Part shown: positions 13,414 through 51,922 of the stretch, piece by piece
How the letters are laid out: every line of letters begins with the position of its first letter
Position numbering within the stretch: the stretch's first letter is position 1
Assembly: GCF_018977255.1 (NCBI RefSeq)
Contig: NW_024704771.1
Span: 3,410,001 to 3,474,000 of the forward strand
Direction: 5' to 3'
Length of the DNA stretch: 64,000 bases
Origin: Callorhinchus milii
Taxonomy: Eukaryota
The notes under the pieces: model-generated
Seen by the model: only the letters and a program-made list of their open reading frames with translations
Databases searched by the model: none
What the model was told of the DNA's origin: nothing
Made by a program: the position numbers and the translations under genes

Positions 13414-13460
13414 CCCCGCGCGACATGTGGAGAAATGACGGTTTGTTTCCTCAGCGCCGG

Positions 13461-14375: not shown

Positions 14376-15001
14376 AACCCAAACCCCCAAACCCCAGAAC
14401 CCCCGAACCCCCGAACATCAGAGCCCCCGAACACCCGAACCCCCGAATCCCACAACCCCCGAGCCCCCGAACCTCCGAGCCCCTGAACCCCCGAGCCCCT
14501 GAACCCCCGAGCCCCTGAACCCCCGAGCCCCTGAACCCCCAAGCCCCTGAACCCCCGAACCCCCGAATCCCAGTACACCCGAACCCCCGAACATCAGAGC
14601 CCCCGAACACCCGAACCCCCGAATCCCAGAACCCCTAAGCCCCCGAACCCCCGAGCCCCTGAACCCCCGAACACCCGAACCCCTGAATCCCAGTACCCCT
14701 AAGCCCCCGAACCCCAGAACACCCGAGCCACCGAACCCCCGAACATCAGAGCCCCCGAACACCCGAACCCCCGAAACCCCAAGCCCCGAACACCCGAGCC
14801 TGAGCCCCCGAACACCCGAGCCCCCGAACCCCCGAGCCCCCGAACCCCCGAACATCAGAGCCCCCGAACACCCGAACCCCCGAAACCCCAAGCCCCGAAC
14901 CCGAGCCTGAGCCCCCGAACCCCCAAGCCCCCGAACCCCCAAGCACCGAACACCCGAACCCCCGAACACCTGAGCCCCCGAACACCCAAACCCCCGAGCC
15001 C
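14376..15001. repeat. Second arm of the same minisatellite (ccccgaac-based units)
   Basis: Direct reading. Confidence 0.95.
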
Positions 15002-15042
15002 CGTCTCAACGACGTCACAAGGAGTTACATCAAATGCAATGA

Positions 15043-25022: not shown

Positions 25023-25103
25023 TTATTTGAATCTAATTGAGGCGTACTCGATGGCTGGATATGATGACCTCCTTCCTGCTCTGCGATTGGCTTCTCTTGC
25101 ATC
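25023..25103 (-). CDS. Receptor A (- copy) terminal exon homolog: DAREANRRAGRRSSYPAIEYASIRFK*
   Basis: ttgttatttctag| acceptor; clear paralog of 43765-43899 with a 54-nt deletion. Whether it is translated in frame depends on splicing. Confidence 0.6.
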   Translation of the reverse strand, partial: DAREANRRAGRRSSYPAIEYASIRFK

Positions 25104-25124
25104 CTAGAAATAACAACAACCACA

Positions 25125-25860
25125 CATTACACTTACACACATTACATTTACGTCTGTCATGTTGGGAGGATGTCCCAAGGCACTGACAGTCAGGCATTTG
25201 GACCTGAGCTAGGGGTTGGGATCAGGAGACGTGGACGGGGAGGGTAGGGGTAGGAGAGTGGCGTAATAAGTGGTCGAAGAGGAGAGTCTTGAGTTGGGCT
25301 TTATATAAATGTAATTTTATTGTTGTTTGTTGTTGAAGGAGGCGACGGAGGGGCCGAGGAGAAGGGACTGTGGGATGGGGTGGAGAGGCTGAAGGCCCGA
25401 CTGCCGATGGTGGGGTGGGCCGGGTGGGGAATGTGGAACGGGCCAGAGCCTGGTGAGCAGAGGGACCAGACAGGTCTATAAGGGGTTAGCAGGTCACTGA
25501 GGTAGGGAGGAACAAGGTTGTGGAGGGATTTGAAGGCAAGGATGAGGATTTTGAATTGTATCCCCTGTGTGATGGGAAGCCAGTGGAGTTGGGCGAGGGT
25601 TGGGGTAATGGGGTCACGGAGCCTAGCGCGGCAGAGGACACAAACTACAGAGTTCTGGATGATCTGCAGTTTGTGGAGGGAAGAGTTGGGAAGGCCAACA
25701 AGCAGCGAGTTGGGTAGTCGAGCCTAGATGTAATAAATGCGCGGGTGAGGGTTTCGGTGGCCTGAGGGGAGAGACAGTGGCGGAGCCGACCGACGTTGCG
25801 GAGGTGGGTCATGGCACAGATGTACGGTAGAAAAGGCAGTTTGAGGGTCAAACAAGTCAA
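25125..25860 (-). mobile_element. L2 LINE 3' fragment
   Basis: RLRHCLSPQATETLTRAFITSRLDY through to the 3' tail. Confidence 0.82.
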
Positions 25861-25879
25861 AGTAGACAGTTGTTTAAAC

Positions 25880-26609
25880 CAGAGGGTCTAACCTGCTGGC
25901 TGCTGAGGTCGGATCCCTATTTGAGAAATGTCCTGTTTGACATGTTTGGCAATGGAACGTGGGAATCGAGTCAGGATTCTGTGACGGTCTCTAGTCTGGT
26001 TCCTGAGCCAGGAGGGTCTGCAGGATTCCAGGGCACTCACTGCTGATGGCCTCCCAGCCCGGCCTGGCGCATCAGCAGGACCTGGAAGGGCCGACCAGTC
26101 ACTGGAGGCAGGGAGTCATCCCACTCAGCTCCTGTTAACCTGCAGCCAAAGCCCTAACTATCGGGTGGTCCTGGCTGGACAAGCAGCGAGAAAGCTGGTC
26201 AGACAGTGATATCAATGACAAGCTGTGTGGTTTTAGCCGGTTAGCCTCCAGCAGTTACCCCAACGCACACTCTGGGGTCCCAAAGCCTTGGCTCTTACGA
26301 CGCCTAATATTTTCCAGAATTTGGTCAGCAGGATGTGTCCCTCCGGGGAGAGAGTGTGGATTCCATTCCAACAATCTGTCTCTGGGATTTCCAGGTGTAG
26401 GTGGGATGTGTGGAAATCTCAGCTTGGTTTGGAGGCTCTTAAGCAACGACGATGGGTTTCCGTGTGTGTCGGATACCCGGCTGACCCCAAACTAATGGAT
26501 TGTCCAGTCCAGATTGGCTCTCCTGATTGGCTTGGGACCTGCGTGTCCTCTGTATTGGAATCCTCCTGCGGGCCTGATGTGGCCCACGGGCCGCCAGTGG
26601 ACTCACCTG
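25880..26609. mobile_element. Non-autonomous hAT/Charlie-like DNA element
   Basis: Degenerate CAG-initiated ends with a ggcccgtgggccacatcaggcccgc subterminal motif; internal pieces recur at about 20680-20840, 21250-21360, 23460-23850, 46220-46320 and 53280-53400. Confidence 0.5.
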
Positions 26610-26639
26610 ACGTAAGCCATCATGCTGTCAGTGTCCCGG
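26607..26639 (-). CDS. Receptor A cytoplasmic exon remnant; would end the protein at AGTLTA* (TGA 26620-26622)
   Basis: Similar to the 3' half of exon 43036-43097 (gcagc..gacactg...tggc...cag|gt); good donor gtgagt, weak A-rich acceptor. Confidence 0.4.
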
Positions 26640-26659
26640 CTGCATGTATGTATCTATGT

Positions 26660-26930
26660 ATTTATATTATTTTCAGTCGTGATCTAAACGCGGGGAAGGA
26701 GCGGGTGAGGTGGAGGGATTGGCGGGAGAGAGATCCAAAGCTTCCGGGCGCAGGGGCTAAACGTACGGCCACCGATGGTGGAGCGGAGGGAACGAGGGTC
26801 AAGCAGGAGGCCGGAGCCAGTCGAGTGAAGGCAGCGGGCTGTGGGGTAAACAGGTCGGAGAGGTGGGGAGGTGCCAGGCCATGAAGGGATTTGAAGACGA
26901 GCGAGAAGATCTTGAAAACGCTAAACCTTG
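26660..26930 (-). mobile_element. Old L2 fragment immediately after the TM exon; orthologous copy at about 42670-42925 (+)
   Basis: Same position in both receptor genes, diverged, so it predates the duplication. Confidence 0.78.
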
Positions 26931-26942
26931 AGACGCACTCAC

Positions 26943-27089
26943 CAGTTTTCCTTCGAGCGAGGCAGTGCAGGCCCAAGACTATAGATATGGAGCCGGCAAT
27001 GACAAGCAGGGCAACTTTACCGTAAAAGATGATCTTGTGAACCTGAACCTCTGTGCTCACAGGAGGCAAACACCCTGCACTGAGGTCAA
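26943..27089 (-). CDS. Receptor A stalk/TM exon: VDLSAGCLPPVSTEVQVHKIIFYGKVALLVIAGSISIVLGLHCLARRKT
   Basis: cttgtctgcag| acceptor, |gtgagt donor, phase 1 to 1, hydrophobic helix with Lys (AAA at 27016-27018), RRK stop-transfer; paralog of 42526-42654. Confidence 0.85.
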
Positions 27090-27594
27090 CTGCAGACAAG
27101 AAAACACGTCATCAAACACTGATAATGCAGTTGTTATAATATGCAACCATAATGATCCTTGCCTTTGACATAACGGTGCTGACAGTCCTCGAATTTAGTA
27201 TCGCGCCGCACCGCGTTGTTGAGACGTTTCAAAGCGCTTCACAGAATATACCGTAAAATGGAGTGACTGTACATTTAGTCGGCAAAACATGGCAGCCAGT
27301 TTGCACAAACAGTCATGCAGAGAGTGACCAATGTTATCCAGGGGAGAGAGAGAAAAAAAAAACACCCTTCTCTTTTCCAATGGTGCCGTGGGAGATCTTT
27401 AAACAAATAAATGGCACATTTAAAACCGAGGATACCTGTGGTCGGGGGCGCGTCACAAAGCGCTTCACGGGATTCGCCGTAACATGTAGTAATTGTAATT
27501 ATATCGAATATCAAATGCAAGGTTTAATTTTATTATCTCTTCGTGATGATCCAACCTTTGGCTGAGGACCTGCTCTTTTCCAATAGCGCTGCAG

Positions 27595-28826
27595 GATCTT
27601 TAACATCCACCTGAACAGGCAGACGGGACCTCGGTTTAACGTCTAATCCAAAGGACAGCGTCTCCAACAATGCAATCTCTCCCCCAGCGCTGCATCAGCT
27701 TAGACTGTGATGATTCCAAGTCCCGAGTTGGGGCTTGAACCCACACAGAGGCCAGAGCGCTACCACTGAGCCAACACAGCCACAAAAGTCTGTTAGCTCT
27801 TATTTCATGAGTTGTTGCATTCAGCAAGCGTGTGCGCGGGGGACAGTGGTTAACCTCCTCTCGCTCTCTCTCCCAGTATCAGCAGGCGTCTGTGTAACCT
27901 GTCTGTGTCTACGAGTCCGCACATGTCTGTGTAAGGAGGTTATGTGATTAACAGTCAGAATCAGCAGAAAGGCATTGCTGCTTTTCCACCATTGTACATT
28001 TTCAGTTTCCCAATTTGTCATTTGACTTAAGACATATTCATTTTTAGTATCTTCCTCATCGCTGGTGCCTCCCCATCCATCGGTCTGTCTGCCCTTGGGA
28101 CGTCCTCCCAAAATGAAAGGCACTCTACAAATCCAATTGGTGGTTGTTGTTGCCTGTCCGTCCATCCCTCCTTCCCTCCCTCCATCCACCCGTCCGTTTT
28201 ATTATTAAATAAATCATATTTTTTTTAAATTTGGTCGCTCGAACCACGGCTGTTCGTGGCCACTGCTGCGCACAATTGGCTGCCACGTTTCAACGACAAA
28301 TTACACGAGCAATTCACTTCACAGGTTATTCTGTGAAGCGCTTTGAGACGTCTCAACGACGTGATAAGGCGCTATAATCAAATGCAAGGATGATTATCAT
28401 TATTACTATCATTATTGTCAGCTTGAACGTACCTGTTTCTGTGATAACTGTTAGGTTGATTTCTTTCGCTTGTGAAAATCCTGCAGTTTCAACTTTAACT
28501 GTGTAGGTGCCGGTGTCATTCAATTCCAAGTTGTCAAGTAGTAGTGAGGCATTCTCGGGAAAGATGGTTGTTCGACTCTCGTAGGATTCCATGGTGTCTC
28601 CTGTCCCAGAACAATTTAATGTAGATGCCTGGAAGCTCAACAATGTACACCACCTCGTATACACATGGATTGGTTTCAGTGAATGTTGGCAAGTCCAGGT
28701 AATTTTCACGTGATCACTGCGTGGGGTTCTGTATGAAACTGGCAGGAGAACTGAGCCATGCAATGTGCCGTTCACCGTCTGCTGCACAGTCAGTTCAAGG
28801 GCCTCAGCAGAGCCTGCGATAAAATA
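27595..28826. repeat. Inverted duplication arm, near-identical to 39921-41154
   Basis: Base-by-base reading: 1232 vs 1234 bp with about ten differences seen. Confidence 0.95.
28433..28813 (-). CDS. Receptor A IgV exon, CD2/SLAM/CEACAM-type N-domain (no B-F disulfide)
   Basis: ttttatcgcag| acceptor, |gtacgt donor, phase 1 to 1; G.SVLLPV, ITW, NASLLL.NL...DTGTYTV.V, EINLTV motifs. Confidence 0.9.
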
Positions 28827-28904
28827 ATAATTAAAATAATAATAATCCCTTCATTTAATACAGCGGATTATCACATTGTTGAGACGTCTCAAAGTGCTTT
28901 GCGG

Positions 28905-29336
28905 TGTTAGTATAAGAAAAGGTTTAATGGCTCATACGCAGCGGCCTATGAGTTGGGCGCCTGACTGGAGACCACGGGAATGCAAACATACTGATTGAGG
29001 AAGAACAGGGAGTGCGGACAAGGAGCTAAGTAAGGAGGACAACTGGTCTCAGCAAGCAAGAGGGACCTACACGAGCGCACATAGACTAGTGGAAAAGTAC
29101 CATCACGAGCAGATCACAAATACACCAAGTAGTTGGGTACAAATGCAACTAACCCACCAAAGAAAAGTTGAGCTGCACAGAATAAGAATTACAGGTCGCT
29201 GAGCCGCGAGCTGGTCATCAGACAAGACTGCTTATCTGCTAATATATTTCTGTTGCATGTGTCGTTGTCGCCTTGTTGTTGAATAAACTGTCTTGATTGT
29301 GCAACTCTGTGTTCAGACCTTTATTGGTTAATGGCA
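28905..29336 (+). mobile_element. Probable solo LTR
   Basis: TG...CA termini, AATAAA at 29282-29287 about 50 bp from the end, flanked by SINE pieces; no clear TSD. Confidence 0.45.
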
Positions 29337-29807
29337 AGGATCCAATTATAATAATCCTTGCATTTGATATAGCGCTTGTTCTGTGAAGCGATTCACAGAA
29401 CACACCGTGAAGTGAATTGACTGTATATTTGTGGGCGAACGCGGCAGCCAATGGCGCACAGCAATGTCCCACAAACAGTCGTAGATTGAAAATGACCAAT
29501 TTATTATTGTTTTTGGTTTCGGAGGGATTATTATTAGGCTCTGTGTGCAGTAAGGAAACTTGCCCGAGGTTTGGCCCTCTGCTTAATTATTTAATATTTA
29601 AAAAATATTAAATTAAAAAAGCAATAATTTGGACACTCAACCCACGACTGTTTGTGGGACGCTGCTGTGTGCAAATTGGCTGCAACATTTCGCCCACAAA
29701 ATACACAGTATACTCTGTGAAGAATTTTGAGATGCCTTAACGGTGCCATAAGGTGCTTTATGAAAGCAAGGATTAGTATTATTATGAGAGTGATAGTAAT
29801 AATCCTT

Positions 29808-30105
29808 GCATATAATAATAATAATAATCTTCTAGATGTCTCAAAGCGCTTCCCTGAATATACTGTGAAGTGAATTGATCGTATATTTGTGGGCGAACGC
29901 GGCAGCCAATTGCGCACAGCAGCGTCCCATAAACAGTCGTGGATTGAAAATGACCAATTTATTATTGTTTTTGGTTTTGAAGGGATTATTATTAGGCTCT
30001 GTGTGGAGTAAGGAAACTTGCCCAAGGTTTCGCCCTGCCTGGAATTGAACTCAGGTCTCTCGCTTGCAAAGCGAGTGCTCTAACCACTGAGCTACAGGAC
30101 TCCAC
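29808..30105 (-). mobile_element. tRNA-SINE, young subfamily
   Basis: Near-consensus copy in intron 1 of receptor A. Confidence 0.88.
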
Positions 30106-30740
30106 TATGAGGTGCTTTGTCTATATATTATAGGTGCAATGCCATAAACAATCATTGTTCACTATATTTATTTTTATTAATAATAATCCTTGCATTTGAT
30201 AAGGTGCCTTATCACATTCTGGATTCCCCCACCAGAAGAAATCGTAGCTACCCTATCGAATCCCTTTATCATTTTAAACACCTCCGATGACCCCTCAACT
30301 TTCTAAAAAATCAAGGGAATACACGACAGGTTTCTAGGTATGATAGACAAAATAGTTACATGAATTGTTAAGTCAAAATATAATAAAAAGCAATTGTTAA
30401 AAATTATAAAATTACAGGCGGTTTGAATGTCTAGTGTTATAGTTACGACGCCGTCTACAAGTATTGTGACATTTATTTGGATAAACTAACTCAAAAGTAT
30501 TAGCTTAGGCAAGTTTCCTTACTCGACACGTCTCTGTTTGTCTAGCGGCAAGTAAGAACCCGGTTGTTAGTCGATTGGCGGATCGCTTTCTGGGGGCATT
30601 AATCCCTTCACAAAAAAAACGAACTGAATGAATAATAATTTGTTCACTCAATCCACTACTGTTTGTGGGACACTGTTGTGCACAATTGGCTGCTGCATTT
30701 CGCCCACAAAATACAAAGTGGATTCACTTTACAGTATATT

Positions 30741-31059
30741 GTGGAGTCCTGTAGCTCAGTAGTTAGAGCACTCGCTTTGCAAGCGAGAGACCTGAGTTCA
30801 ATTCCAGGCAGAGGGCCAAACCTCGGGCAAGTTTCCTTACTCCACACAGAGCCTAATAATAATCCCTCCAAAACCCAAAACAATAATAAATTGGTCATTT
30901 TCAACTACGACTGTCTGCGGGACATCGCTGTGCGCAATTGGCTGCCGCGTTCGCCCACAAATATACAGTCAATTCACTTTACAGTGTGTTCTGTGAAGCG
31001 CTTTGGGACGTCCTCCCGACGTGAAAAGCGCTATATCAAATGCAAGGATTATTATTATA
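30741..31059 (+). mobile_element. tRNA-SINE, young subfamily, nested in an older SINE
   Basis: The host SINE breaks at cagtatatt and resumes at ctgtgagg. Confidence 0.9.
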
Positions 31060-31195
31060 TTCTGTGAGGTGCTTTGAGCCGTCTCAATGACATGATAAGG
31101 CGCTGTATCAAACACAAGGATTATTATATGTTATTATACTATTATATACGTTTGTCTGTAAAATACAGTCAATACATTTCAAATGCTTTATTCTT

Positions 31196-31790
31196 GTTCA
31201 GAGTTAACGGATCTTAAGGTCGGTTTAAATCCCTGTCCCGTTTGCTCCGAATTCTGCAACCCGTTTGTGAAGCCAAGACAAGGTAAGACGAGGGGAATCG
31301 AGAACCCGTGTAACTTAACAACAAAGCAAAGAGGAAAACATGAGACTTACAGGCGACGACGGTAAGGAAGACACAGGCAACCTGCTGGAAGGAGGTGAGG
31401 GACTCGGGTGGCTGGTACATGCTGTTCAGTGGAGAGACACGCACGAGGGGTGAGGATGACGTTAGAGATCAGAGAGGTGCTGCCACACACTGCTCGCCTC
31501 ACCTGCTCTGTGGTTTCACAAGCACCCGACGCACGCCACACACAAACAAGCCACACGACACACACACGACACACACAAACAAGCCCACCCGACACACGCA
31601 CAGTCACACGACACACACACGACACACACACACACACCCACCCACGCACACAAACACTCCCACACAGAGGGGAACGGATGTGACCCTAACTCACACCTCA
31701 CCCCAACAGCCCTCCCCCGCCACCCACTCACTCATTTCACGGGGACCTGGCCACCTGACTTTGTTTAAAGAGAGCAAATAATAATAATAA
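31196..31790. repeat. Inverted duplication arm (promoter/leader) pairing with about 33250-33826
   Basis: Near-identical over about 31196-31615, patchier towards the promoter. Confidence 0.93.
31351..31420 (-). CDS. Receptor A leader exon: MYQPPESLTSFQQVACVFLTVVA
   Basis: ATG after an acceptor, hydrophobic signal core, |gtaagt donor in phase 1 joining the V exon (T+GC=C, SAEA then LELTV). Confidence 0.85.
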
Positions 31791-32159
31791 TAATAGCCCA
31801 CAAAATACAGTCACTTCACTTGACAGTATATCCTGTGAAGCGCTTCGAGACGTCTCAATGAGGTGACGAGACGCTATATTCTGTGAAGCGCTTTGAGCTG
31901 TCTAGAAGACGTGAAAAGCGCTATATCAAATGCAAGTATTATTATTATATCAAATGATGTTTCAATAATATATTATAGATTATTGCGATAATGCTTTATT
32001 AGTATAGAAAATAATATAACAGTTATTGCCTTTTATAATAATGTAATAATTATATCAGATTATATGTATAATTGTATGTATAATTGGTCACCGTTTGTGG
32101 GACACTGCTGTTTCACCCACAAAATGTACAGTCAATTCACTGTGGCGTATATTCTGTAA

Positions 32160-32488
32160 ATAATAATAATAATAATAATAATCCTTGCATTTGATATAGC
32201 GCTTTTCACGTCGGGAGGACGTCCCAAAGCGCTTCACAGAACACACTGTAAAGTGAATTGACTGTATATTTGTGGGCGAACGCGGCGGCCAATTGCGCAC
32301 AGCAATGTCCCACAGACGGTCGTAGATTGAAAATAACCAATTTATTATTGTTTTGGGTTTTGGAGGGATTATTATTAGGCTCTGTGTGGAGTAAGGAAAC
32401 TTGCCCGAGGTTTGGCCCTCTGCCTGGGATTGAACTCAGGTCTCTCACTTGCAAAGCGAGTGCTCTAACCACTGAGCTACAGGACTCC
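32160..32488 (-). mobile_element. tRNA-SINE, young subfamily, between the two receptor promoters
   Basis: Near-consensus copy. Confidence 0.9.
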
Positions 32489-33601
32489 AAAAGCGCTTTG
32501 AGACGTCTCGAAGACGTGATACGGCGCGATATCAAGCGCAAGGATTATTATTATAGAAACATACAGTCTGTGTTACACAAATAGGAATCGCCATCGTCAG
32601 GGCCTGCAAGGGCTCCAATCGCAATGCGACTCCTCCCATCTCCATCAGTGAGTGAGTGAGTAGCCACAGCATTTTGACGGGCTTTATGTCTGAATTAACA
32701 GATATTTAAAGCGGATGAGAATACAAATGAATCAGGGTGGAGAGGTTCGGCCAATTTACCGGGGTCTGTGTGCCTCGTTGGACGAAAGGCGGAGAGAGGG
32801 AGAGAGAGAAAGCGAAAGAGAGGCAGTGCGAGAATTTGTACTATATGCAACATATTTGATATATAATCTAATTATTATAATAACAGGCAATAACTATTGT
32901 TGTATTGTTATTTTCTATACTAATAATAATTGATAACATATCATTTGATATAGGTCCTTATCATGTCAGTGAGACGTCTTGAAGCGCCTCACAGAATCTA
33001 GTGTATTTTGCGTGCAATAACTATAAATAATTATTAAGTGGGTAATAATCCCTCCAAAAAAAATTATAATTTGGTCTCTGAATCCTTGACTGTTTATGGG
33101 ACACTGCTGTGAGCAATTGGAAGCCGTGTTTCACCCACAAAATATACAGTCAATTTGCTTTATAGTGTTTCCGTGAAACGCTTTGAGACGTCTCGATAAC
33201 GTGATAAGGCGCTGTATCAAATGCAAGGATTATTAATACATATTATATACTATAATTATTATTGTCTCTCTTTAAACAAAGCGGTGTGATTGGGGTGAGG
33301 TGTGAGTTGGGGTAATTCTGAGTCACATCCTTTCCGTCGTGCGTGTGTGTGTGTCGTGCGTGTGTGCCGTGTGGCGGTGCGTGTGTCGGGTGGGCTTGTT
33401 TGTGTGTGTGTCGTGTGGCTGTGCGTGTGTCGGGTGGGCTTGTTTGTGTGCGTCGTGTGTGTGTCGTGTGGCTTGTTTGTGTGTGCCGTGCGTCGGGTGC
33501 TTGTGAAACCACAGAGCAGGTGAGGCGAGCAGTGTGTGGCAGCACCTCTCTGATCTCTAACGTCATCCTCACCCCTCGTGCGTGTCTCTCCACTGAACAG
33601 C

Positions 33602-33671
33602 ATGTACCAGCCACCCGAGTCCCTCACCTCCTTCCAGCAGGTTGCCTGTGTCTTCCTTACCGTCGTCGCCT
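33602..33671 (+). CDS. Receptor B (+ copy) leader exon, identical to receptor A leader
   Basis: Same 70 nt, |gtaagt donor; preceded by an 81-nt 5' UTR intron (33520-33600) mirrored at 31422-31502. Confidence 0.87.
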
Positions 33672-34086
33672 GTAAGTCTCATGTTTTCCTCTTTGCTTTG
33701 TTGTTAAGTTACACGGGTTCTCGATTCCCCTCGTCTTACCTTGTCTTGGCTTCACAAACGGGTTGCAGAATTCGGAGCAAACGGGACAGGGATTTAAACC
33801 GACCTTAAGACCCGTTAACTCTGAACCCTTTCGAATCAATTTATCCAATTCTTTAAGTGTTCAAATAATAATTGAGTCGCTCAATCCATGACTGTTTGTG
33901 GGACACCTCTGTGCGCCTATAGCTGCAAAGGTTCGCCCACAAAATACAGTCAATTCACTTACAATATACAGTATTCTGTGAAGTTCGTTGAGAGATCGCA
34001 ACAACGTGATAAGGCGCTATATCAAATGCAAGGCTTATTATTATGATTAACTGGAAGATAGCGGTTCCTTGATGCTTCATTCAAAG

Positions 34087-34155
34087 AGCACGTACCAGCC
34101 ACCCAAGTTTCTCACCTCCTTCCAGCAGACTGCTGGTATCCTCCTTACCATCGCG
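34087..34155 (+). pseudogene. Degenerate third copy of the receptor leader exon
   Basis: ACG tac cag cca ccc aag ttt ctc acc tcc ttc cag cag act gct ggt atc ctc ctt acc atc gcg: clear paralog of the leader with ATG to ACG and no gtaagt donor. Confidence 0.75.
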
Positions 34156-34664
34156 CAGCACTTCGCTTCAATTCACTTTGTAGGATATTCTTTTGACATC
34201 TCAATGGCACCCTATCAAACGCAAGGATTATTATAATTCATATTATTTCTGACTCTTTTAGGGTTTGAAATTTTGTATGGTGTGCTGTGAAGTTAGATTG
34301 GTCGTGTAGTTTGAGGTTGTTAATAATAACCCTTGCACATATACACGCACTGACTGTATACTTGCGGGAGAAGCATGGCAGCCGATTGCACACCGCAAAC
34401 AGTCATAGATTGAGTGGCCACATTATTATTTAATAATTTCTTTTTTGAGTGATTATTATCCCCGGAACCAATCCACCAATCCAGTAAGAATCGGGTTCCT
34501 ACTTACTGCTGAGTAAACGGGCGCGTGTGTGGAGTAAGGAAACTTGCCCAATGTTTCTCCCTGCCCGGGAATCGTACCCAAGTCCTCTCGCTTGCGAGGC
34601 GAGTGCTCTAACCACTGAGCTACAGGACTCCATAATAATAATAATCCTTGCATTTGATAGAGTC

Positions 34665-35025
34665 CTGTAGCTCAGTGGTTAAGAGCATTCACCTCGCCAG
34701 CGAGATACCTGGGTTCGATTCCCACCGCGGCAAAATGTTGGCCAAGTTTCCTTACTCCACACGCTACCGTTTACCGAGCAACAAGTAGGACCTGGTTGTT
34801 TGTTAATCGATTTACAGATTGCTTTTCCGGGGGTAATAATTCCTTCAAAAATAATAATAATTTCTTCACGCAATCCACGACTCTCTGTGGGACGCTGCTG
34901 TGCGCAATTGGCTACCACATTTCGCCCACAAAATGTACAGTCAATTCACTTTGCAGCATATCCTGTGAAGCGCTTTCAGACGTCTCGAAGACGTGATAAG
35001 ACGCTATATTAAATACAAGGATTAA
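34665..35025 (+). mobile_element. tRNA-SINE, older long subfamily
   Basis: Head, central segment and tail present; sits head-to-head with a - strand copy ending at about 34631. Confidence 0.85.
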
Positions 35026-36049
35026 CATTAATATATAGCGCCTTATCGTGTTGTTGAGATATCTCAAAGCGCTTCACAATATACTGTAAAGTAAACTGAC
35101 TGTATTTTTTGGGTGATAATGCTCCTTTTCAGACATCTGTCTGCGTTCCCTTTGAAAGAATCGATGGATTCTGCCTCAACTGCATTTGTGTCAGAAAATT
35201 CCACAATGCCACAACCTATCGTGTAAAATATTGTTTTCGAACCAACACTTTAATTATTTTTTTAGGAGTAACTTAAATTTCTGGCCTCTCAATCCTGACT
35301 CACAGACATATGGATGCAATTATTTCTCGTGATGTTTTTTGACCGTTTGTGGGGCAGACGCTGCTGTGCGCAATTAGCCGCCGTGTTTCGCTCACAAAAT
35401 ACAGATTCAGTTCACTTTACAGTACATCCTGCAAAGCGCTTCGAAACGTCTCAACAACATGATAATGAACCATATCAAATGCAAAGCTTACTATTAGTAT
35501 TATTATTGACTAAATAGGATTTGCCTGTAACTCACACGGTCAGATTAAGTGTTATGGTCCCGACTGATATGACTTAGGTGAGTGAGTTTTATAGTAGATT
35601 CTGTGAAGCTGGATCAAGTGCAAGGATTATTATTATTATTAGAATTTTACAGCACAGAAGGCCACCGTGCCTGCTCTCTGGGGAGAGCTCTGTGTACGAC
35701 ATTCCTCTCCTGCCTTTTCCCCAAATACTTCCATGTTTTTCCTTCGAAATTTGTCAAATTCCCTTGTGAAAGCTCTGAAATGCTACAAAAAAAATCTTAA
35801 GCCCACACACCGGTGGCATTTCATTCCCCGTTCTATATATAACAGATCTTTTATTTACCAAGAGTAAATAGTAAAGTTTATTTATTGATTGCTAATAATA
35901 AATAAATTTATCTCTGGGGGTAAAAAAAAAAAGAATTTGGTCACTCAATCCACGACTGTTTTTTCCACAAAAAATATATACGCTCAATCCACTTTACAGT
36001 ATATTCTGTGAAGCGCATTGAGACATCTCAATGATGTGATAAGAGGCCC

Positions 36050-36351
36050 GTGGAGTCCTGTAGCTCAGTGGTTAGAGCACTCGCTTTGCAAGTGAGAGAC
36101 CTGAGTTCAATTCCAGGCAGAGGGCCAAACCTTGGGCAAGTTTCCTTACTCCACACAGAGCCTAATAATAATCCCTCCAAAACCAAAACCAATAATAAAT
36201 TGGTCATTTTCAATCCACGACTGTTTGTGGGACATCGCTGTCACAATTGGCTGCCGCGTTCGCCCACAAATATACAATCAATTCACTTTACAGTCTATTC
36301 GAGAAGATGTGAAAAGCCCTGTATCAAATGCAAGGATTATTATTATTATTA
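36050..36351 (+). mobile_element. tRNA-SINE, young subfamily, inserted in an older SINE tail
   Basis: Near-consensus copy with a partly deleted tail. Confidence 0.88.
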
Positions 36352-36719
36352 TGCTATTATTATATCAAATGCAAGGTTTATTACTATTATTTGGCCACAA
36401 GTCTCTTCACTCTACGATTAAGTATTTGTTGATTTCAGCGATTTAATTGAGTTTCTCTCTCTACTATGTTTTCAGTCTTCAATTGTAATTTCAGTGCATA
36501 AAGATTATTAATATATATATTACATAAGATCTCATACAATAATTTATTTTATAACCAGCTATTATTGTCAAAAGCGGTAACTATGTTTTATAGACATTTT
36601 ATAGACCACAGGCATTTTGCAGACTTCAAGCTCCGTAATAAAAGAAATAATAAAATAATAATTTAGTCACTCAATCCACCACTGTGTGTGGGACACTGCT
36701 GTGTGAAATTGGCTGCCGC

Positions 36720-37030
36720 ATTTCGCCAACAACAACAACACGACATTTTATAGAGCGCCTTTCATGTCGGGAGGACGTCCCAAAAGCGCTGAACAGTCGG
36801 GTGTCGGGGCCCGAGCGTGGGGGGGAGCGGTGGTGTAGGGGTGAGGGGAGGCAGAGAGGTGGGAGGGCGACCAAAGGCACGATCGAAGAGAAAGGTCTCG
36901 AGACCGGCCTTGCAGGAGGCGAGGGAGGAAGTGAGGCGAAGGGACTGTGGGATGGAGTTCCAGAGTGTGGGGGCAGAGAGGCTGAAAGCCCGGCCACCGA
37001 TGGTAGGGCGGGTCGGGCGGGAGACATGGA
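36720..37030 (-). mobile_element. L2 LINE 3' fragment
   Basis: L2 3' motifs and tail. Confidence 0.8.
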
Positions 37031-37811
37031 GTCACTACTCTCTGCCGTGTATCTTGTGAAGCACTTTTGAGACGCCTCGACAGCGTGAAGGCGCTACAGC
37101 AAATGTCAAATAGGAGATTTCCCCCAAAAAAATATGCCCATGATTTTCTGTCGCCACTTTAGTACAGATATCTCTCTCTGGAACGGTGTGTGATTTCCTC
37201 AGTGGCTGCTTTGTGGCATGCGCACCTCATATTTTGGGGCTTAAATATTAAAACATTCTTTAAATATAAAAAAAAATCGAAGACGTGAAAAGCGCTTCAT
37301 GAAATGCAAGGATTACGATATTTTTTTTTATTAAAAAAAATGTCCACGACACTCGCGCCTGCCAGAGCTTTATATCATGTCTTTACGTCAATCAATCATT
37401 GATCTTGACTGATACACACACAGACATTGTTTTACTAGTACAGTAATAATCTAATATAAAGTATAATATAAAATATATTAATATAATATAATGTAAAGTA
37501 TAATAATCATCCTTGTATATTTGATATAGCGCTTTTCACGTCTTCCAGTCGTCTCAAAGCGCTTCACAGAACAGACTGTAAAATGAATTGACTGCATATT
37601 TGTGGGCGAAACGCGGCCTTCAAACAGCCGCGGATTGAGGTGAACAAATCATTATTGGGTTTTTTGAGGGATTATCATCAGGCGTGTGGAGTAAGGAAAC
37701 TCGTCGAAGGTTTTATCCTGCCGGGAAATGAACCCAGGTCTCTCACTTGCGAGGCGAGTGATCTAATTACTGAGCTACAGGACTCCACAATTATATTAAT
37801 ATTATATTACA

Positions 37812-37993
37812 TTAATAATCTAATATAAAGTGTAATAATCTAATATAAAGTATAATAATCTAATATGATGTACAATAATCTAATATAAAGTATAATAATC
37901 TAATATAAAGTATAATAATCTAATATAAAGTATAATAATCTAATATAAAGTATGATAATCTAATATAAAGTATGATAATCTAATATAAAGTGT
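37812..37993. repeat. 20-bp AT-rich tandem repeat (taatctaatataaagtataa), about 9 units
   Basis: Direct reading. Confidence 0.93.
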
Positions 37994-38348
37994 TATAACA
38001 CTGAAATCTACAATCCATATTCGATTGTTTGGTTGCAAGCGTAACAGCAACGGGTACAACTAGTAACTATATAAGATGTTTATATAATCACGCAGGACAT
38101 CAATTTAACGTCTCATACAAGCGACAGCACCTCCAACAACACAACCCACCACAATATTTCACTGGGGTGTCAGGATTCTCACTCAGAGACGCGAGCCAGG
38201 CTCCAAGCCGAGCCGGGCTGACATATCTTGAGACTTAATGTAGAACGTGAAAAAGGAGACACAGACGTGTCTGTGCATTTCCAAGCTCACACGTGTAACA
38301 AATACTGCTTGGTGCAATCACACATTGGATGCCACGTATTTGTTTTTT

Positions 38349-38645
38349 TGCAAGTGAGAGACCTGAGTTCAATTCCAGGCAGAGGGTGAAACCTCGGGCA
38401 AGTTTCCTTACTCCACACAGAGCCTAATAATAATCCCTCCAAAACCAAAAACAATAATAAATTGGTCATTTTCAATCCACGACTGTTTGTGGGACATTGC
38501 TGTGCGCAATTGGCTGCCGCGTTCGCCCACAAATATACAGTCAATTCACTTTACAGTGTGTTCTGTGAAGCGCTTTGGGACGTCCTCCCGACGTGAAAAG
38601 CGCTATATCAAATGCAAGGATTATTATTATTATTATTATTATTGT
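38349..38645 (+). mobile_element. tRNA-SINE, young subfamily, 5' truncated
   Basis: Starts at ttgcaagtgagagacc; full 3' part. Confidence 0.88.
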
Positions 38646-39404
38646 TGTATAACAGATACAATGATCGGCCAGTGCATGCAATGTTATAACTAATAAATCA
38701 TAATTTAACCTTCGCCTTCGATATAGCGGCTCATCCCATTGTCGAGATGTCCCAAAGCGCTTCGCAGAATATACAGCCAAGCGAAGTTGGCCCACAAAAT
38801 ATACAGTCAATACACTTTTCAGTAAAATAATAATAATCCTTGCATTCGATTATCGTGCCTTGTCACGTGTTCGAGACTCTCAAAGCGCTTCACAGAATAT
38901 ACTGTAAAGTGAATTGACTGCATATTTTGTGGGCAAAACACGGCAGCCAATTACGCACAGCAGCGTCGTGGATTGAGTGACCAACTTAGTATTCTTATTA
39001 TTCTGAAGGAATTATTACCCCCGGAAACGCGATCCGCCAATCGACTGAACAACCGGGTTCGTACTTACTGCTCTAACCACTGAATGACAGGACTCTTTTG
39101 TGAATCCGTGAAGTGTTGTGAGATGTCGCCATGATGCGGTAAGGCGCTAGAGCAAATGCAAGGATTATTATTATTTTATGGACGCAACACGGCAGCCAAT
39201 TGCACACAGCAGGGTCCCACAAACACGTGGATTAAGTGACCAAATCATTATTTACTTTTATTTTTTTATTCTCGTCGATGAGGTCTGGGACCCAGGGTTT
39301 GGAAAGCCAAAGCTTATTTACTCCACACGTAAATTGCCACACATGGCAGTAAATTGGAAACCAGTTGTTAATTGATTGGCGGATCGCTTTCTGGGAGTAA
39401 TAAC

Positions 39405-39709
39405 AATAATAATCCTTGCATTTGATATAGCGCTTCTAGACGTCCCAAAGTGCATCACAGAACACACTGTAAAGTGAATTGAATGTATATTTGTGGGCGA
39501 ACGCGGCAGCCGATGGCGCACAGCAATGTCCCACAAACAGTCGTGGATTGAAAATGACCAATTTATTATTGTTTTTGGTTTTGGAGGGATTATTATTAGG
39601 CTCTGTGTGGAGTAAGGAAACTTGCCCGAGGTTTGGCCCTCTGCCTGGAATTGAACTCAGGTCTCTCGCTCGCAAAGCGAGTGCTCTAACCACTGAGCTA
39701 CAGGACTCC
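39405..39709 (-). mobile_element. tRNA-SINE, young subfamily, nested in an older SINE
   Basis: Near-consensus copy. Confidence 0.88.
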
Positions 39710-39933
39710 AAAAATTATCCCTAAAAAAATAAGTTGGTCACTCAGTCCGCGACAGTTTATGGGACCTTGCTGTGCGCAATTGGCTGCCACGTTTTGCCAA
39801 AATATATAGTCAAATCACTTTACAGTATATTCTGTGAAGCACTTTGAGACGTCCCAATGACATGACAAAGCGCTACATCAAATGTAAGGTTCATTATTAT
39901 TATTCTGATTATTATTATACTATTTTATCGCAG

Positions 39934-40317
39934 GCTCTGCTGAGGCCCTTGAACTGACTGTGCAGCAGACAGCGGTGAACGGCACATTGCATGGCTCAGT
40001 TCTCCTGCCAGTTTCATACAGAACCCCACGCAGTGATCACGTGAAAATTACCTGGACTTGCCAACATTCACTGAAACCAATCCTTGTGTATACGAGGTGG
40101 TGTACATTGTTGAGCTTCCAGGCATCTACATTAAATTGTTCTGGGACAGGAGACACCGCAAAATCCTACGAGAGTCGAACAACCATCTTTCCCGAGAATG
40201 CCTCACTACTACTTGACAACTTGGAATTGAATGACACCGGCACCTACACAGTTAAAGTTGAAACTGCAGGATTTTCACAAGCGAAAGAAATCAACCTAAC
40301 AGTTATCACAGAAACAG
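39934..40317 (+). CDS. Receptor B IgV exon, CD2/SLAM/CEACAM-type
   Basis: Same splice sites as the - copy, 384 nt, phase 1 to 1; five N-glycosylation sequons (NGT, NCS, NAS, NDT, NLT). Confidence 0.9.
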
Positions 40318-40966
40318 GTACGTTCAAGCTGACAATAATGATAGTAATAATGATAATCATCCTTGCATTTGATTATAGCGCCTTATCACGTCGTTGAGAC
40401 GTCTCAAAGCGCTTCACAGAATAACCTGTGAAGTGAATTGCTCGTGTAATTTGTCGTTGAAACGTGGCAGCCAATTGTGCGCAGCAGTGGCCACGAACAG
40501 CCGTGGTTCGAGCGACCAAATTTAAAAAAAATATGATTTATTTAATAATAAAACGGACGGGTGGATGGAGGGAGGGAAGGAGGGATGGACGGACAGGCAA
40601 CAACAACCACCAATTGGATTTGTAGAGTGCCTTTCATTTTGGGAGGACGTCCCAAGGGCAGACAGACCGATGGATGGGGAGGCACCAGCGATGAGGAAGA
40701 TACTAAAAATGAATATGTCCTAAGTCAAATGACAAATTGGGAAACTGAAAATGTACAATGGTGGAAAAGCAGCAATGCCTTTCTGCTGATTCTGACTGTT
40801 AATCACATAACCTCCTTACACAGACATGTGCGGACTCGTAGACACAGACAGGTTACACAGACGCCTGCTGATACTGGGAGAGAGAGCGAGAGGAGGTTAA
40901 CCACTGTCCCCCGCGCACACGCTTGCTGAATGCAACAACTCATGAAATAAGAGCTAACAGACTTTT

Positions 40967-41225
40967 GTGGCTGTGTTGGCTCAGTGGTAGCGCTCTGGCC
41001 TCTGTGTGGGTTCAAGCCCCAACTCGGGACTTGGAATCATCACAGTCTAAGCTGATGCAGCGCTGGGGAGAGATTGCATTGCTGGAGACGCTGTCCTTTG
41101 GATGAGACGTTAAACCGAGGTCCCGTCTGCCTGTTCAGGTGGATGTTAAAGATCTCCTGCGGCGCTGTTTGAAAAGAGAGGGGAGTTCCTCTCTCTCCGG
41201 GTGTCCTGGCCAACAATCCCCCAAA
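40967..41225 (+). mobile_element. DeuSINE-type SINE (tRNA head plus Deu domain)
   Basis: gctgtcctttggatgagacgttaaaccgaggtcc...gttaaagatc...gaaaagagaggg...gtgtcctggccaac resembles the Deu domain as recalled. Mirror copy at about 27560-27780 (-); fragments at about 24755-24880 and 46345-46460. Confidence 0.75.
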
Positions 41226-41693
41226 TAAGATTGATCACTCACTCCATGGCTGTTGTGGGCCACTTCTGTGTGCAAATTGGTTGCCGCGTTTCACAGTCAC
41301 GACACTGTACATCACGACACAGTATATCCTGTGAAGCATATAGCAGTGAGCCACAAAGAGTCGTGAATTGAGTGACCAAATTATTGTTGCCATTATTTTG
41401 GGAGGAGGAGGCATTATTCGCCCCGAAAGCAAACCGCCAATCAACTATCAACTTGCTGCTCGTAAACAGAGGCGCGTGGAGTAATGAAATGCATCCTCTG
41501 GTAATTGGACCCAGGTCCCATCACTTGCGAGGTGAGCGCTCTAACCAATATGCAACGGGACACTGCTGTGCGCAAGTGGCTGCTACGTTTTGCCGAGAAA
41601 ATGTCCAGGCAATCCACTTCACCGTATATCCTGTAAAGCGCTGTGAGGCGCGATAAGGCGCGATATCGATTGCAAGGATTATTATTATTTTTA

Positions 41694-42237
41694 TGAAGCA
41701 GATTTCTATGGTTTTGATGTGACCGACAAGCCCAGTAAAGTGTTAGAGTTTGGGCAGATGGTAATATGGTTTCCTCTGCTTCAGAGTTTTGAAGTCACGG
41801 TCAGACTGATGAGGTCATGGAAATAATGCTGTAAACGTAGCCGGGCTGTACTTTATAAGCTTACGCTAATCTCTGAATGAGAGGATATGAAGCCATCGAT
41901 TCTTATCGCGATTCTCTGCTCTTTCGACCCACATTGGTATTGAAGCGAAGTGCTTAGTGCATTTGCCTCGCAAGCGAGAGGACCTGGTTTGATTTCCGGG
42001 CAGGGCAAAACCTTAGCCTATGTCGACCTAGCAGCAGGTAGGAACCCAGTTGTTAAACGATTAGCAGATCGCTTTTCCATGGGTAATAATTCCTCAGAAA
42101 AAAATTCCTCATCTTCGTGTCAGTCCAGACTGACCCCGACTTCAAAACTCTGAACCAGAGGAAACCACATTACCATCTGCCCAAACTAACACTCACTGGG
42201 CTTGTAGGCCACTTAGAAACCATAGAAATCGACTTCA
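41694..42237. mobile_element. Foldback/MITE-like element with terminal inverted repeats of about 110 bp
   Basis: 41694-41809 is the reverse complement of about 42126-42237 with scattered mismatches; a SINE head lies inside. Confidence 0.7.
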
Positions 42238-42525
42238 CTCAATCCACGACTGTTTGTGGGACGCTGCTGTGCACAATTGGCAGCCGTGTTTCACCTACAA
42301 AATTCACAAGTCAATCCACTTTACAGTATATTCTGTGAAGCACTTTGAGACGTCTCAACCTGATAAGGCGCTATAACAATTGCAAGGATTATTACTATCA
42401 TATCATGTCATAAACACCGCATTATCAATGTTATATATGTCATAAACACCGCATTATCAATGTTATATATAATCAGCTTTATATATTACCAGTATCTGAT
42501 AACATGTGGACTTACTTGCCTTCAG

Positions 42526-42654
42526 TAAACAACAGCACCGGTTTGCTTCCGAACAACACAACGGATGCGGGTGGCAGTATAATTCCCATGGTTGTTGTTC
42601 CTGGCTCCATATGTACAGTCTTGGTTCTGTACTGCCTCGCTCGAAAGCGAACCG
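42526..42654 (+). CDS. Receptor B stalk/TM exon: VNNSTGLLPNNTTDAGGSIIPMVVVPGSICTVLVLYCLARKRT
   Basis: cttgccttcag| acceptor, |gtgagt donor, phase 1 to 1, uncharged 21-aa TM, RKR stop-transfer. Confidence 0.87.
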
Positions 42655-43035
42655 GTGAGTGCATCTTAATGTTTGCGTTTTCAAGGTCCTCTCACTCCTC
42701 TTCAAATACCTCATGCCCTGTTACCACCCTACCTCTCTGACCTGATTTCTCCTCAACCCACTACCCACCGCCTCCGTTTGACTTGCTCCGGCCTCCTGCT
42801 TGTCCCTCGTGCTCCACCATCGGCAGCCGCACTTTCAGCCCGAAGCTTTGCGACTCTCTCCCTCAATCACTCCACCTCGCCCCCTCCCTCCCCTCTTTTA
42901 GATCATGACCGAAGACCTTCCTCTTCAACCGTGATCAAGTGCTCTGGAGTGCCACCCTGCGTGAGCTATCAATGCAAACGTGTTGTTCAGATCGCTCTGT
43001 GTATTAATGCCTTTGGTTAACTGTTTTTAATTTAG

Positions 43036-43097
43036 CTGCAGGACGAAGGAGCAAGGGATTGGATGTGGCAGCAGACACTGGCGAGGCAGTGGCCCAG
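43036..43097 (+). CDS. Receptor B cytoplasmic exon 1 (AAGRRSKGLDVAADTGEAVAQ)
   Basis: tttttaatttag| acceptor (second in-frame AG 6 nt downstream), |gtaagc donor, phase 1 to 0. Confidence 0.8.
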
Positions 43098-43764
43098 GTA
43101 AGCACTGCTTCCATTATTGCAGCTCAAAACCAGTTACTTATAATAATAATAATAATAATAAACCTTGCATTTGATATAGCGCCTTATCAAGTCATTGAGA
43201 TGTCTCAAAGCACTTCACAGAATATACTGTAAAGTGTAGTGACAAAATACAGTAGCCAATTGCACACAGCAGTGTCCCACAGTCATCGATTGAGTGACCA
43301 AATTATTACTATTATTATTTTTGGAGGGATCATTACCCCCGGAAAGCGATCTGCCAATCGACTAACAACTGGGTAAGTACTTGGTAAGTACTGGGTAAAC
43401 AGAGGCGTGTGAAATAAGGAAATACGCCGAAGGTTTCACCCAACCCAGGAATCTAACCACGGTCCTCTCAATATATACTGTAAACTCCTGATAAATCGTC
43501 ACTCCAGGGGGATATGCAGCCAGGATTTTGACAGCACGGTAACTTAAGTTGTAGTGACCAAGTTAAACCAGGGTCAAATTATCAGGAATCTACCCAAAAT
43601 ACTCGGTCACTACACTTCACAGTATATTCTGTGAAGCACTTTGAGACATCTCAAATGTTCCGATAAGGCTCTGCCCGATAACGGGTCTGGCCGATCAGAA
43701 TAAAATCTTGTTTATGTGGTAGCTAGGAGGTTGGTAAACTCTAAACTCTGCTGTTTGTGTCCAG

Positions 43765-43899
43765 GATGCTGATGGCCACACACCTTCTGAGACCATTGTC
43801 TACGCAATGATCAGCAACTTCCCAAGTGAACCCCGTCACGGAGCAGGAAGTAGGACATCAGATCTAGCCATGGAGTACGCTTCAATTAGATTCAAATAA
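43765..43899 (+). CDS. Receptor B terminal exon with two ITIM-type motifs (IVYAMI, MEYASI)
   Basis: ctgtttgtgtccag| acceptor, phase 0, DADGHTPSETIVYAMISNFPSEPRHGAGSRTSDLAMEYASIRFK*. Confidence 0.87.
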   Translation, partial: DADGHTPSETIVYAMISNFPSEPRHGAGSRTSDLAMEYASIRFK

Positions 43900-51604: not shown

Positions 51605-51922
51605 GTGGAGTCCTGTAGCTCAGTGGTTAGAGCACTCGCTTTGCAAGCGAGAGACCTGAGTTCAATTCCCGGCAGAGCGAAACCTTGGGCAACTTTCCTT
51701 ACTCCATACGCCTGATAATAATCCCTCCAAAACCAAAAACAATAATAAATTGGTCACTTCAATCCACGACTGTTTGTGGGACGCTGCTGTGCGCAATTGG
51801 TTGCCGCGTTTCGCCCACAAATATGCAGTCAATTCACTTTACAGGATATTCTGTGAAGCGCTTTGAGACGTCGAAAGACGTGAAAAGCACTATATCAAAT
51901 GCAAGGATTATTATTATTATTA
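51605..51922 (+). mobile_element. tRNA-SINE, intermediate type
   Basis: Young-type head and central deletion with an older-type tail. Confidence 0.85.

Follow-up and report, generated by a model that had tools for sequence, protein, structure and literature searches.

Within a window of 64,000 nucleotides (nt) from the elephant shark Callorhinchus milii, a holocephalan, two divergently oriented receptor genes of the immunoglobulin (Ig) type were identified, which are referred to here as gene A (minus strand) and gene B (plus strand). Both lie on the unplaced 4.1-Mb scaffold MU249860.1 (GCA_018977255.1), and all positions given below are those of the window. The two genes have identical leader exons and almost identical exons for a single V-set domain, and they differ in their transmembrane (TM) segments and tails. 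Gene B is transcribed and encodes a tail with an immunoreceptor tyrosine-based inhibitory motif (ITIM). Gene A has lost this motif, and its V exon has probably been kept equal to that of gene B by gene conversion. With slightly more confidence than doubt, gene A is regarded as a working ITIM-less partner of gene B, either activating or a decoy, whereby any expression or function of gene A is predicted.

An initial annotation of this locus, made from the DNA letters, had called the system undescribed. This holds in so far as gene B is uncharacterised and gene A unannotated, but gene B was already present in RefSeq as LOC103189486/XP_007908094.1, and the mechanism has been published for CEACAMs (PMC5112662, PMC13278318). 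The architecture of the pair is likewise already published for CEACAM and other paired receptors. In the literature on the locus names and on paired receptors of sharks, nothing specific was found.

Two divergent genes with a shared binding domain

The start codons of gene A and gene B are located at 31420 (minus) and 33602 (plus) with 2,182 bp between them, in agreement with the distance of about 2.2 kb and the divergent orientation given in the initial annotation. Self-comparison of the window revealed two high-identity inverted blocks of 1.3 and 0.45 kb with 97-99% identity, far above chance, which are listed below as tracts 2 and 1, respectively. Between the blocks, unrelated sequence and many copies of a ~320-bp short interspersed nuclear element (SINE) were found. 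The features of the pair are:

25023-25210, minus: relic of the last exon of gene A, recognised by alignment to gene B; old acceptor lost, ITIM stretch replaced, 3' part AIEYASIRFK followed by a stop
26943-27089, minus: gene A exon 3, stalk with Cys, hydrophobic segment IIFYGKVALLVIAGSISIVLGLHCLA with Lys, RRKT; consensus donor G/gtgagt
27573-28899: putative conversion tract 2, arm A (V exon and 860 nt of intron 2), partner 39837-41178, from self-comparison
28433-28813, minus: gene A exon 2, V-set domain, open frame, acceptor and donor intact (Pfam V-set, E=6e-11)
31196-31684: putative conversion tract 1, arm A (promoter, leader exon, start of intron 1), partner 33322-33826, from self-comparison
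31351-31420, minus: gene A exon 1, leader, 100% identical to the leader of gene B
31421-33601: 2.2-kb divergent intergenic spacer with both putative promoters and a SINE copy (~32160-32490)
33322-33826: putative conversion tract 1, arm B, partner 31196-31684, from self-comparison
33602-33671, plus: gene B exon 1, ATG and signal peptide MYQPPESLTSFQQVACVFLTVVA, phase 1; donor T/gtaagt, leader as in XP_007908094.1
39837-41178: putative conversion tract 2, arm B, partner 27573-28899, from self-comparison
39934-40317, plus: gene B exon 2, V-set domain (Pfam V-set, E=1.9e-10, above cut-off)
42526-42654, plus: gene B exon 3, N-glycosylated stalk, uncharged TM segment IIPMVVVPGSICTVLVLYCLA, RKRT; GT..AG sites and RNA contig
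43036-43097, plus: gene B exon 4, 62-nt cytoplasmic exon AAGRRSKGLDVAADTGEAVAQ; RNA joint, identical in both RefSeq models
43765-43899, plus: gene B exon 5 with IVYAMI, MEYASI and stop TAA; sequence and RNA contig

Splicing of the five exons of gene B yields a protein of exactly 259 amino acids, with GT..AG at all junctions. Its V domain is 100% identical to XP_042200694.1, "uncharacterized protein LOC103189486", and the annotated span of LOC103189486 (12,560 nt on MU249860.1) corresponds to window positions 31340-43899. The older RefSeq model XP_007908094.1 describes the same 259-residue protein with three substitutions in the V domain and with the correct leader. In the current model XP_042200694.1 the first exon, MRLTGDDGKEDTGNLLEG, is the antisense of the leader region (31340-31396 plus, or 33682-33626 minus) and provides no signal peptide. 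This exon is very likely a prediction error, probably caused by the inverted duplicate.

Transcription of gene B was followed in the Logan contigs of the RNA-type run X1. One contig covered 40041-40317 with B-type variants and continued 16 nt beyond the V-exon donor, a second joined 42523-42653 to 43035-43097 and contained 27 nt upstream of this, and a third covered 43761-43854 of the last exon, preceded by 26 nt of an upstream exon. Gene B is thus transcribed and spliced from the V exon through to the last exon, and the splice between leader and V exon is predicted by the gene models. RNA for the splice models of both genes had been proposed as a check of the initial annotation. It was obtained for the V-to-last-exon splices of gene B, and no RNA contig of gene A was found in the available runs.

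The TM segment of gene B is without charge, and its tail tyrosines Y228 (IVYAMI) and Y253 (MEYASI) are separated by 25 residues, both as initially described, and are encoded in a single exon. IVYAMI fits the ITIM consensus (I/V/L/S)xYxx(I/V/L). MEYASI, which had been likened to the TEYASI of SIRPalpha, matches neither this consensus nor that of the tyrosine-based switch motif of immunoreceptors (ITSM), yet it aligns with the TEYASI of relatives. Gene B could be aligned end-to-end with a turtle homologue, with IVYAMI on TIYARI and MEYASI on TEYASI. From its ITIM tail, gene B is predicted to be an inhibitory-type receptor.

Some variation was observed in the V exons. The X1 RNA contig of the V exon contains two synonymous changes (40208 and 40211) that are absent from both copies, and the exon varies among individuals (intervals 40026-40211 and 28539-28672), as is also apparent from the three residues in which XP_007908094.1 differs. 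A DNA contig of run X3 combined the intron flank and the CAG insertion of gene B with gene A-type bases at 40084 and 40158-40161, and two origins are conceivable for it, a chimeric k-mer contig or a conversion allele that segregates.

The V domain of gene A has 97% amino-acid identity to that of gene B. Its TM exon (27089-26943) encodes ...SAGCLPP...HKIIFYGKVALLVIAGSISIVLGLHCLARRKT, which holds both the stalk Cys and the Lys, and the complete product of the stalk/TM exon is VDLSAGCLPPVSTEVQVHKIIFYGKVALLVIAGSISIVLGLHCLARRKT, with 49 open codons between consensus acceptor and donor. Compared with gene B, this exon contains two in-frame indels of 15 and 3 nt. In the last-exon relic, the old acceptor CAG is changed to CAA and the distal reading ...AIEYASIRFK stops at 25023. 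The insertion that replaces the ITIM stretch creates a new pyrimidine-rich acceptor with AG at 25104/25103. Were the TM exon (phase 1) spliced directly to 25103, a frameshift would result, with a Tyr-free end of 23 residues, GCKRSQSQSRKEVIISSHRVRLN followed by a stop (open reading frame 25033-25197). Alternatively, IEYASI would be kept if some further exon restored the frame. The initial annotation was borne out for the Lys of the TM segment, placed at its outer edge, for the Cys of the stalk and for the broken tail.

Divergence between the two genes falls into two tiers. The leader exons are identical at 70/70 positions, as the initial annotation had it, and this identity extends into the 5' flank and over the first 155 nt of intron 1 (one difference). 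Tract 1 reaches 99-100% identity across ~340 nt and fades upstream in a GT-rich repeat. The V exons, previously described as nearly identical, agree in 376/384 columns. What separates them is one 3-nt indel, one single-nucleotide polymorphism and one 4-nt block, and each of the three alters the protein. Over the last 100 nt of intron 1 the copies share 76% identity; at the V exon this value leaps to 98-99%, and it is 99% for the initial 860 nt of intron 2. The second tier comprises intron 3 (84.5%), the end of the last exon (89%) and the stalk/TM exon (~70%), and intron 1 has lengths of 2.5 and 6.3 kb in the two copies. This two-tier pattern fits an old inverted duplication of the whole gene followed by recent conversion of two tracts, and gene conversion is the process by which the tracts were probably homogenised. 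In CEACAM studies, opposite orientation is considered necessary for intrachromosomal conversion, and CEACAM families contain inverted paired genes in which conversion is confined to the N exon and is followed by non-synonymous changes (PMC5112662, PMC13278318).

The TM exon contains more mismatches than the flanking intron (38/129 versus 39/251, Fisher p=0.002), although the TM core alone gave no significant difference. Together with the in-frame indels, this faster divergence is a hint of directed remodelling rather than plain decay, and falls short of proof. Estimates of non-synonymous and synonymous divergence (dN/dS) of 0.47/0.73 for the TM exon (42 codons), with three events in the V exon, were too noisy and were not used.

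Repeats were observed throughout the locus. An imperfect GT-rich repeat (units such as GTGTGTCGGGTGGGCTTGTTTGTGTG) lies directly 5' of both leader exons (33340-33500 and 31530-31680); its copy number is unequal between gene A and gene B, and it is in this repeat that tract 1 fades. At least 10 SINE-like copies (~320 bp, 88-98% alike, in both orientations) are present in the window, at 1667-1994, 3759-4090, 29835-30105, 30740-31061, 32164-32491, 36050-36306, 38347-38638, 39398-39712, 51605-51925 and 54701-55028. Several of these are situated in the introns of the receptor pair and in the spacer, and explain most of the difference in intron 1 length.

A V-set family with recurrent paired forms

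The canonical Cys pair is missing from the V domain, with VLLPVSY as the B strand and GTYTVKV as the F strand, and the same applies to the consensus of its relatives. A conserved Cys pair of the family's own (NCS...CSG) is found in the C'-D region. The overall pattern is VLLPVSY...W...NCS-x(9-11)-CS...FPENASLLL.NLQL.DSG.Y, followed by a TM segment and often by an ITIM and an ITSM 20-25 residues apart, and gene B fits this pattern. In an exhaustive HMMER search, 146 representatives of clusters were retrieved at E<=1e-3, of which 38 reached <=1e-10. Members were found in ducks, chicken, gulls, raptors, turtles, frogs, newt, gar, lungfish, lizard and several sharks and rays, and nearly all are named "uncharacterized" or carry automatic HEPACAM2-like or CEACAM-like names. 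Most of the long-tailed relatives have two Tyr motifs 20-25 residues apart, and the tail of gene B, which aligns with ITIM and ITSM tails of turtle and bird relatives, is conserved from chimaera to turtles and birds.

Phmmer against PDB gave the N domains of CEACAM6, CEACAM1 and CEACAM8 as top matches, limited to ~35 residues of the E-F strands with E=1e-5. When the family profile was compared with solved structures, CD276 came out on top, with CEACAM6 and JAML about equal. For the V domain, the AlphaFold model has high confidence. Foldseek on PDB returned generic V-set matches; the matches in the Swiss-Prot models included VSTM5 and TIGIT, with HEPACAM2, HEPACAM, MPZL1 and P0 among the best. 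Beyond such generic V-set neighbours, the fold searches (Swiss-Prot models and PDB) and the protein atlas revealed nothing. A primate protein with a VTYSSL...VIYSEV tail, which is taken to be CEACAM1-like, matches the family only at E=4e-5. The assignment of the pair to a CD2/CEACAM-type V class, made in the initial annotation, thus agrees with the missing canonical Cys pair and with CEACAM N domains as best solved-structure matches, but these matches are local and weak.

Strong relatives include Gallus gallus LOC771657 and further galliform proteins. Fowl and songbirds have been reported to be without CEACAM genes (PMC13278318), and the presence of chicken relatives therefore implies that the family differs from the CEACAM1 lineage studied there. 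Membership in CEACAM proper was considered and rejected on the basis of the locus, the own Cys pair, the presence in chicken and the weak, local similarity. The family is handled here as a separate V-set family without a name, related to CEACAM and HEPACAM and widespread in non-mammalian jawed vertebrates.

Paired forms recur among the relatives. In sawfish, houndshark, turtles, a lizard (Pogona), gar and lungfish, ITIM forms occur, as do short-tail forms that have an NxIR-type TM Arg. Many relatives are of this second kind, with a very short tail, and the TM segment of the short-tail sawfish relative starts with NIIRLALGSLL. A look for inverted partners beside elasmobranch homologues (Pristis, Heterodontus and Heptranchias) gave no informative result within 10 kb. 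In the yellow-legged gull (Larus michahellis NC_133904.1, 50.47 Mb), an ITIM-less gene for 238 amino acids is located 2.3 kb upstream of an ITIM gene for 331 amino acids, in the same orientation and with V domains that are 92% identical. In a tree of V domains, the pairs of chimaera, gull and auk cluster by species and not by tail type, which is a signature of concerted evolution or repeated duplication. The chimaera pair is accordingly one instance of a general family pattern, and the recurrence of such pairs raises the prior that ITIM-less partners are functional.

Some gene models of these relatives are unusual. Models of the gull-type gene in the kittiwake (Rissa tridactyla) carry the name 'trimethyllysine dioxygenase', so that a prediction fused with a neighbouring TMLHE gene is suspected. 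In the sawfish (Pristis pectinata CM019888.1, 11.53 Mb) the Arg-TM relative has a RING/B-box/PRY-SPRY (TRIM) gene on one side and a ribosomal S13/RPS18-type gene on the other, and a Pogona relative is fused with 'TRIM10-like' in one gene model. These positions may hint at a linkage of the Arg-TM subgroup to the region of the major histocompatibility complex (MHC).

Proposed history and alternative readings

The following history is proposed for the pair. A single-V, ITIM-bearing immunoreceptor gene would have undergone an old inverted duplication in Callorhinchus milii, after which both copies evolved as a paired set. Recent intrachromosomal conversion would then have re-homogenised the tract with promoter and leader and the tract with the V exon and 860 nt of intron, while the remainder of the two genes drifted or was reshaped. 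Presumably, the tail of gene B recruits SH2 phosphatases. Gene A would have lost the ITIM and the 62-nt exon and gained the in-frame hydrophobic insertion, the Lys at the outer TM edge and the stalk Cys, and its product would be an ITIM-less counterpart with the same ligand specificity that either activates via an adaptor bound to the charged TM segment or acts as a signalling-dead decoy.

The pair might also be a false inverted duplication of one gene, since long-read assemblers can give rise to inverted arms of 97-99% identity such as those seen here on an unplaced 4.1-Mb scaffold. The two copies, however, differ in intron 1 (2.5 versus 6.3 kb), in SINE content, in their TM exons (70% identity) and in their tails. 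In four DNA-type runs from different samples, all sampled sequence words of the gene A TM exon were present, and DNA contigs of runs X13 and X4 cover this exon with 0-2 differences. Short-read contigs of other individuals contain the copy-specific exons of both genes, and contig depth was 15-21 over the shared segments and 5-10 over the copy-specific parts, a ratio of ~2:1 on the gene A and the gene B side alike. Gene A and gene B both exist as DNA, as follows from the differing lengths and SINE content of the introns, the copy-specific contigs and the depth ratio. An assembly artefact, which the initial annotation had named as a possible refutation, was rejected on these grounds and is considered very improbable.

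Several observations weigh against a working gene A. Its sampled TM-exon words were found in 0/8 listed RNA-type runs, two RNA runs mapped on gene A left both its TM exon and its tail relic uncovered (depth zero), and the sole RNA contig of a V exon is B-type. No protein sharing three 5-residue words with the gene A TM exon was found in a collection of 5.8 billion sequences, and the annotation of GCA_018977255.1 calls no gene at gene A. The 3' end of gene A is visibly decayed, and no homologue of the 62-nt exon 4 of gene B was detected in gene A by blastn-short or tblastn. With 20 hydrophobic residues behind it, the Lys at the outer TM edge may be interfacial or outside the membrane rather than within the bilayer. 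Finally, three V-exon differences are too few for a selection test. The RNA sets were small (84-270 Mb of contigs), and gene B itself was found at a depth of only 4-7. For this reason, the silence of gene A at the RNA level is regarded as weak negative evidence. Of the two members, a transcript was thus seen for gene B alone in this thin RNA sampling, and likewise for the second possible refutation named initially, absence of a gene A transcript, the finding is that none was seen in the thin RNA.

In an alternative reading, gene A is an unprocessed pseudogene, a dead inverted copy whose 5' half is kept fresh by recent conversion from gene B, which would then be the single functional receptor. 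Besides the absence of an RNA contig on the TM exon and tail, of a candidate protein and of an annotated gene, this reading accounts for the broken ITIM exon, the lost acceptor and the missing exon 4, and conversion of pseudogenes by functional neighbours is common. Against it, the TM exon lies outside the recent conversion tracts (70% identity) and is nevertheless open over 49 codons, with consensus splice sites and with indels that are in frame. It has diverged faster than the adjoining intron, and the promoter and leader tract has also been kept identical. Intact ITIM-less partners are present in relatives, and RNA sampling was very thin. A pseudogene is held to be quite possible, although short of probable. 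It is also conceivable that both genes encode adhesion molecules of the HEPACAM/CEACAM type whose Tyr motifs serve endocytosis or adhesion signalling, with no activating or inhibitory logic. The automatic HEPACAM2-like and CEACAM-like names of the relatives and the Foldseek Swiss-Prot matches to HEPACAM2, HEPACAM, MPZL1 and P0 point in this direction. The tandem ITIM/ITSM spacing of 20-25 residues, the short-tail relatives with NxIR-type Arg and the species-homogenised V domains, however, are hallmarks of paired receptors, and a pure adhesion role is judged improbable. The adhesion and inhibitory readings are compatible, since CEACAM1 does both.

The reading of gene A as a working ITIM-less partner is retained in its cautious form. 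The initial annotation had proposed an inhibitory receptor paired with a putative activating one. Of this, the divergent single-V pair, the homogenised binding domain, the diverged TM segments and tails and the transcribed ITIM tail of gene B were confirmed, but not the activating role of gene A. This role is treated as hypothetical because no RNA and no protein candidate were found, the Lys is at the TM edge and the tail is ambiguous, and a pseudogene or a tail-less decoy fits gene A as well as an activating receptor does. More speculatively, the chimaera pair might be the earliest-branching case of an ancient, mammal-lost family of single-V paired receptors, whose V exons have been matched by conversion since the origin of jawed vertebrates, and gene A might record the stepwise birth of an activating, disulfide-linked receptor with a Lys-containing TM segment; this wider view is considered rather unlikely.

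If gene A is functional, cartilaginous fishes would already have had the device of the mammalian CEACAM, KIR, SIRP and Siglec systems, in which a counter-receptor shadows an inhibitory receptor and the binding domain is matched by conversion. This is usually read as an answer to pathogens that exploit the inhibitory receptor, and such an arms-race architecture would be placed at the base of jawed vertebrates. Moreover, birds, turtles, amphibians, gar, lungfish and elasmobranchs are seen to share a large receptor family whose automatic names are uninformative or misleading. For the annotation of the locus, gene B very probably has a wrong first exon in the current NCBI model, and gene A is missing.

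Genomic surroundings and known paired receptors

Outside the receptor pair, an exon-sized open reading frame at 1050-1586 (plus) matched DUF3754 (E=1e-11); among named chordate clusters, 'transmembrane protein 143' is the nearest to it, and this flanking gene is a possible synteny marker. WD40-repeat exons of the RBBP4/GRWD1-like type and an acidic Ser/Asp/Glu-rich exon were found at 5600-7086 and ~9150-9660 (minus). Identification of this WD40 neighbour as GRWD1 was based on likeness by eye and is unconfirmed, since searches gave generic WD40 matches only. In human, TMEM143 and GRWD1 are located at 19q13.33, which we take to be on the same arm as, but outside, the CEACAM neighbourhood. The region 8599-15000 contains N-masked gaps in long TC/AC-rich microsatellite arrays and in minisatellite arrays of a 36-nt type (11507-12838 and 13450-15003), with a GC content of 34-60%. 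Open reading frames of 129-251 amino acids at 57771-60978 (minus) resemble retrotransposon fragments (reverse-transcriptase/endonuclease-like).

Among known systems, the CEACAM pairs come closest. In human CEACAM1/CEACAM3, in Xenopus ceacam301/303 and in the CEACAM1 and CEACAM1L decoys of crocodilians and turtles, the V-like N domain is without the canonical disulfide, as in gene A and gene B. Moreover, the inhibitory member has an ITIM and an ITSM, the partner gene is oppositely oriented, conversion does not reach beyond the ligand-binding exon and the sequence close to it, and the few residual differences are non-synonymous (PMC5112662, PMC13278318). In contrast to the chimaera family, CEACAM N domains do not have the NCS...CSG Cys pair. 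Gene A and gene B are without IgC domains, both Tyr motifs of gene B are encoded in one exon, and gene A, unlike the CEACAM partner, has a TM Lys and no tyrosine-based activation motif of immunoreceptors (ITAM). The surroundings also differ, as the pair is flanked by the TMEM143-like and WD40 genes, whereas the CEACAM locus is marked by LIPE, TOMM40/APOE, BCL3, CNFN and PAFAH1B3 (PMC3628338, PMC13278318). The bird relatives are located in genomic contexts other than the CEACAM locus or the TMEM143/WD40 neighbourhood.

For gene A, a close counterpart is provided by CEACAM1-like genes of terrapins that consist of N and TM exons only. Like gene A, these are derived from an ITIM gene, have kept the V and TM parts and have lost ITIM and ITSM at the 3' end; they were proposed as a new type of decoy, there too with no expression data (PMC13278318). 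In the terrapin genes, the loss is ascribed to a mutated donor of the TM exon (PMC13278318), whereas in gene A this donor is consensus and the loss lies downstream, where exon 4 is missing and the last exon is broken.

At the level of fold and architecture, HEPACAM2, HEPACAM, VSTM5 and TIGIT resemble gene A and gene B in having one N-terminal V-set domain followed by a TM segment, and the V domains of HEPACAM and HEPACAM2 showed 24-29% identity in the Foldseek alignments. The HEPACAMs differ in their extra C2 domain, in their long proline-rich tails without this ITIM/ITSM pair and in the lack of paired genes. In the classical pairs KIR-S/L, SIRP-beta/alpha, PILR-beta/alpha, SIGLEC14/5, SIGLEC16/11 and CD300, a shared ectodomain is combined either with an ITIM or with a basic TM residue and a short tail; the activating form is derived from the inhibitory form, and pairing with an adaptor is proven. 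These charged-TM pairs belong to unrelated Ig lineages, and the Lys of gene A, in comparison, is placed at the edge of the TM segment.

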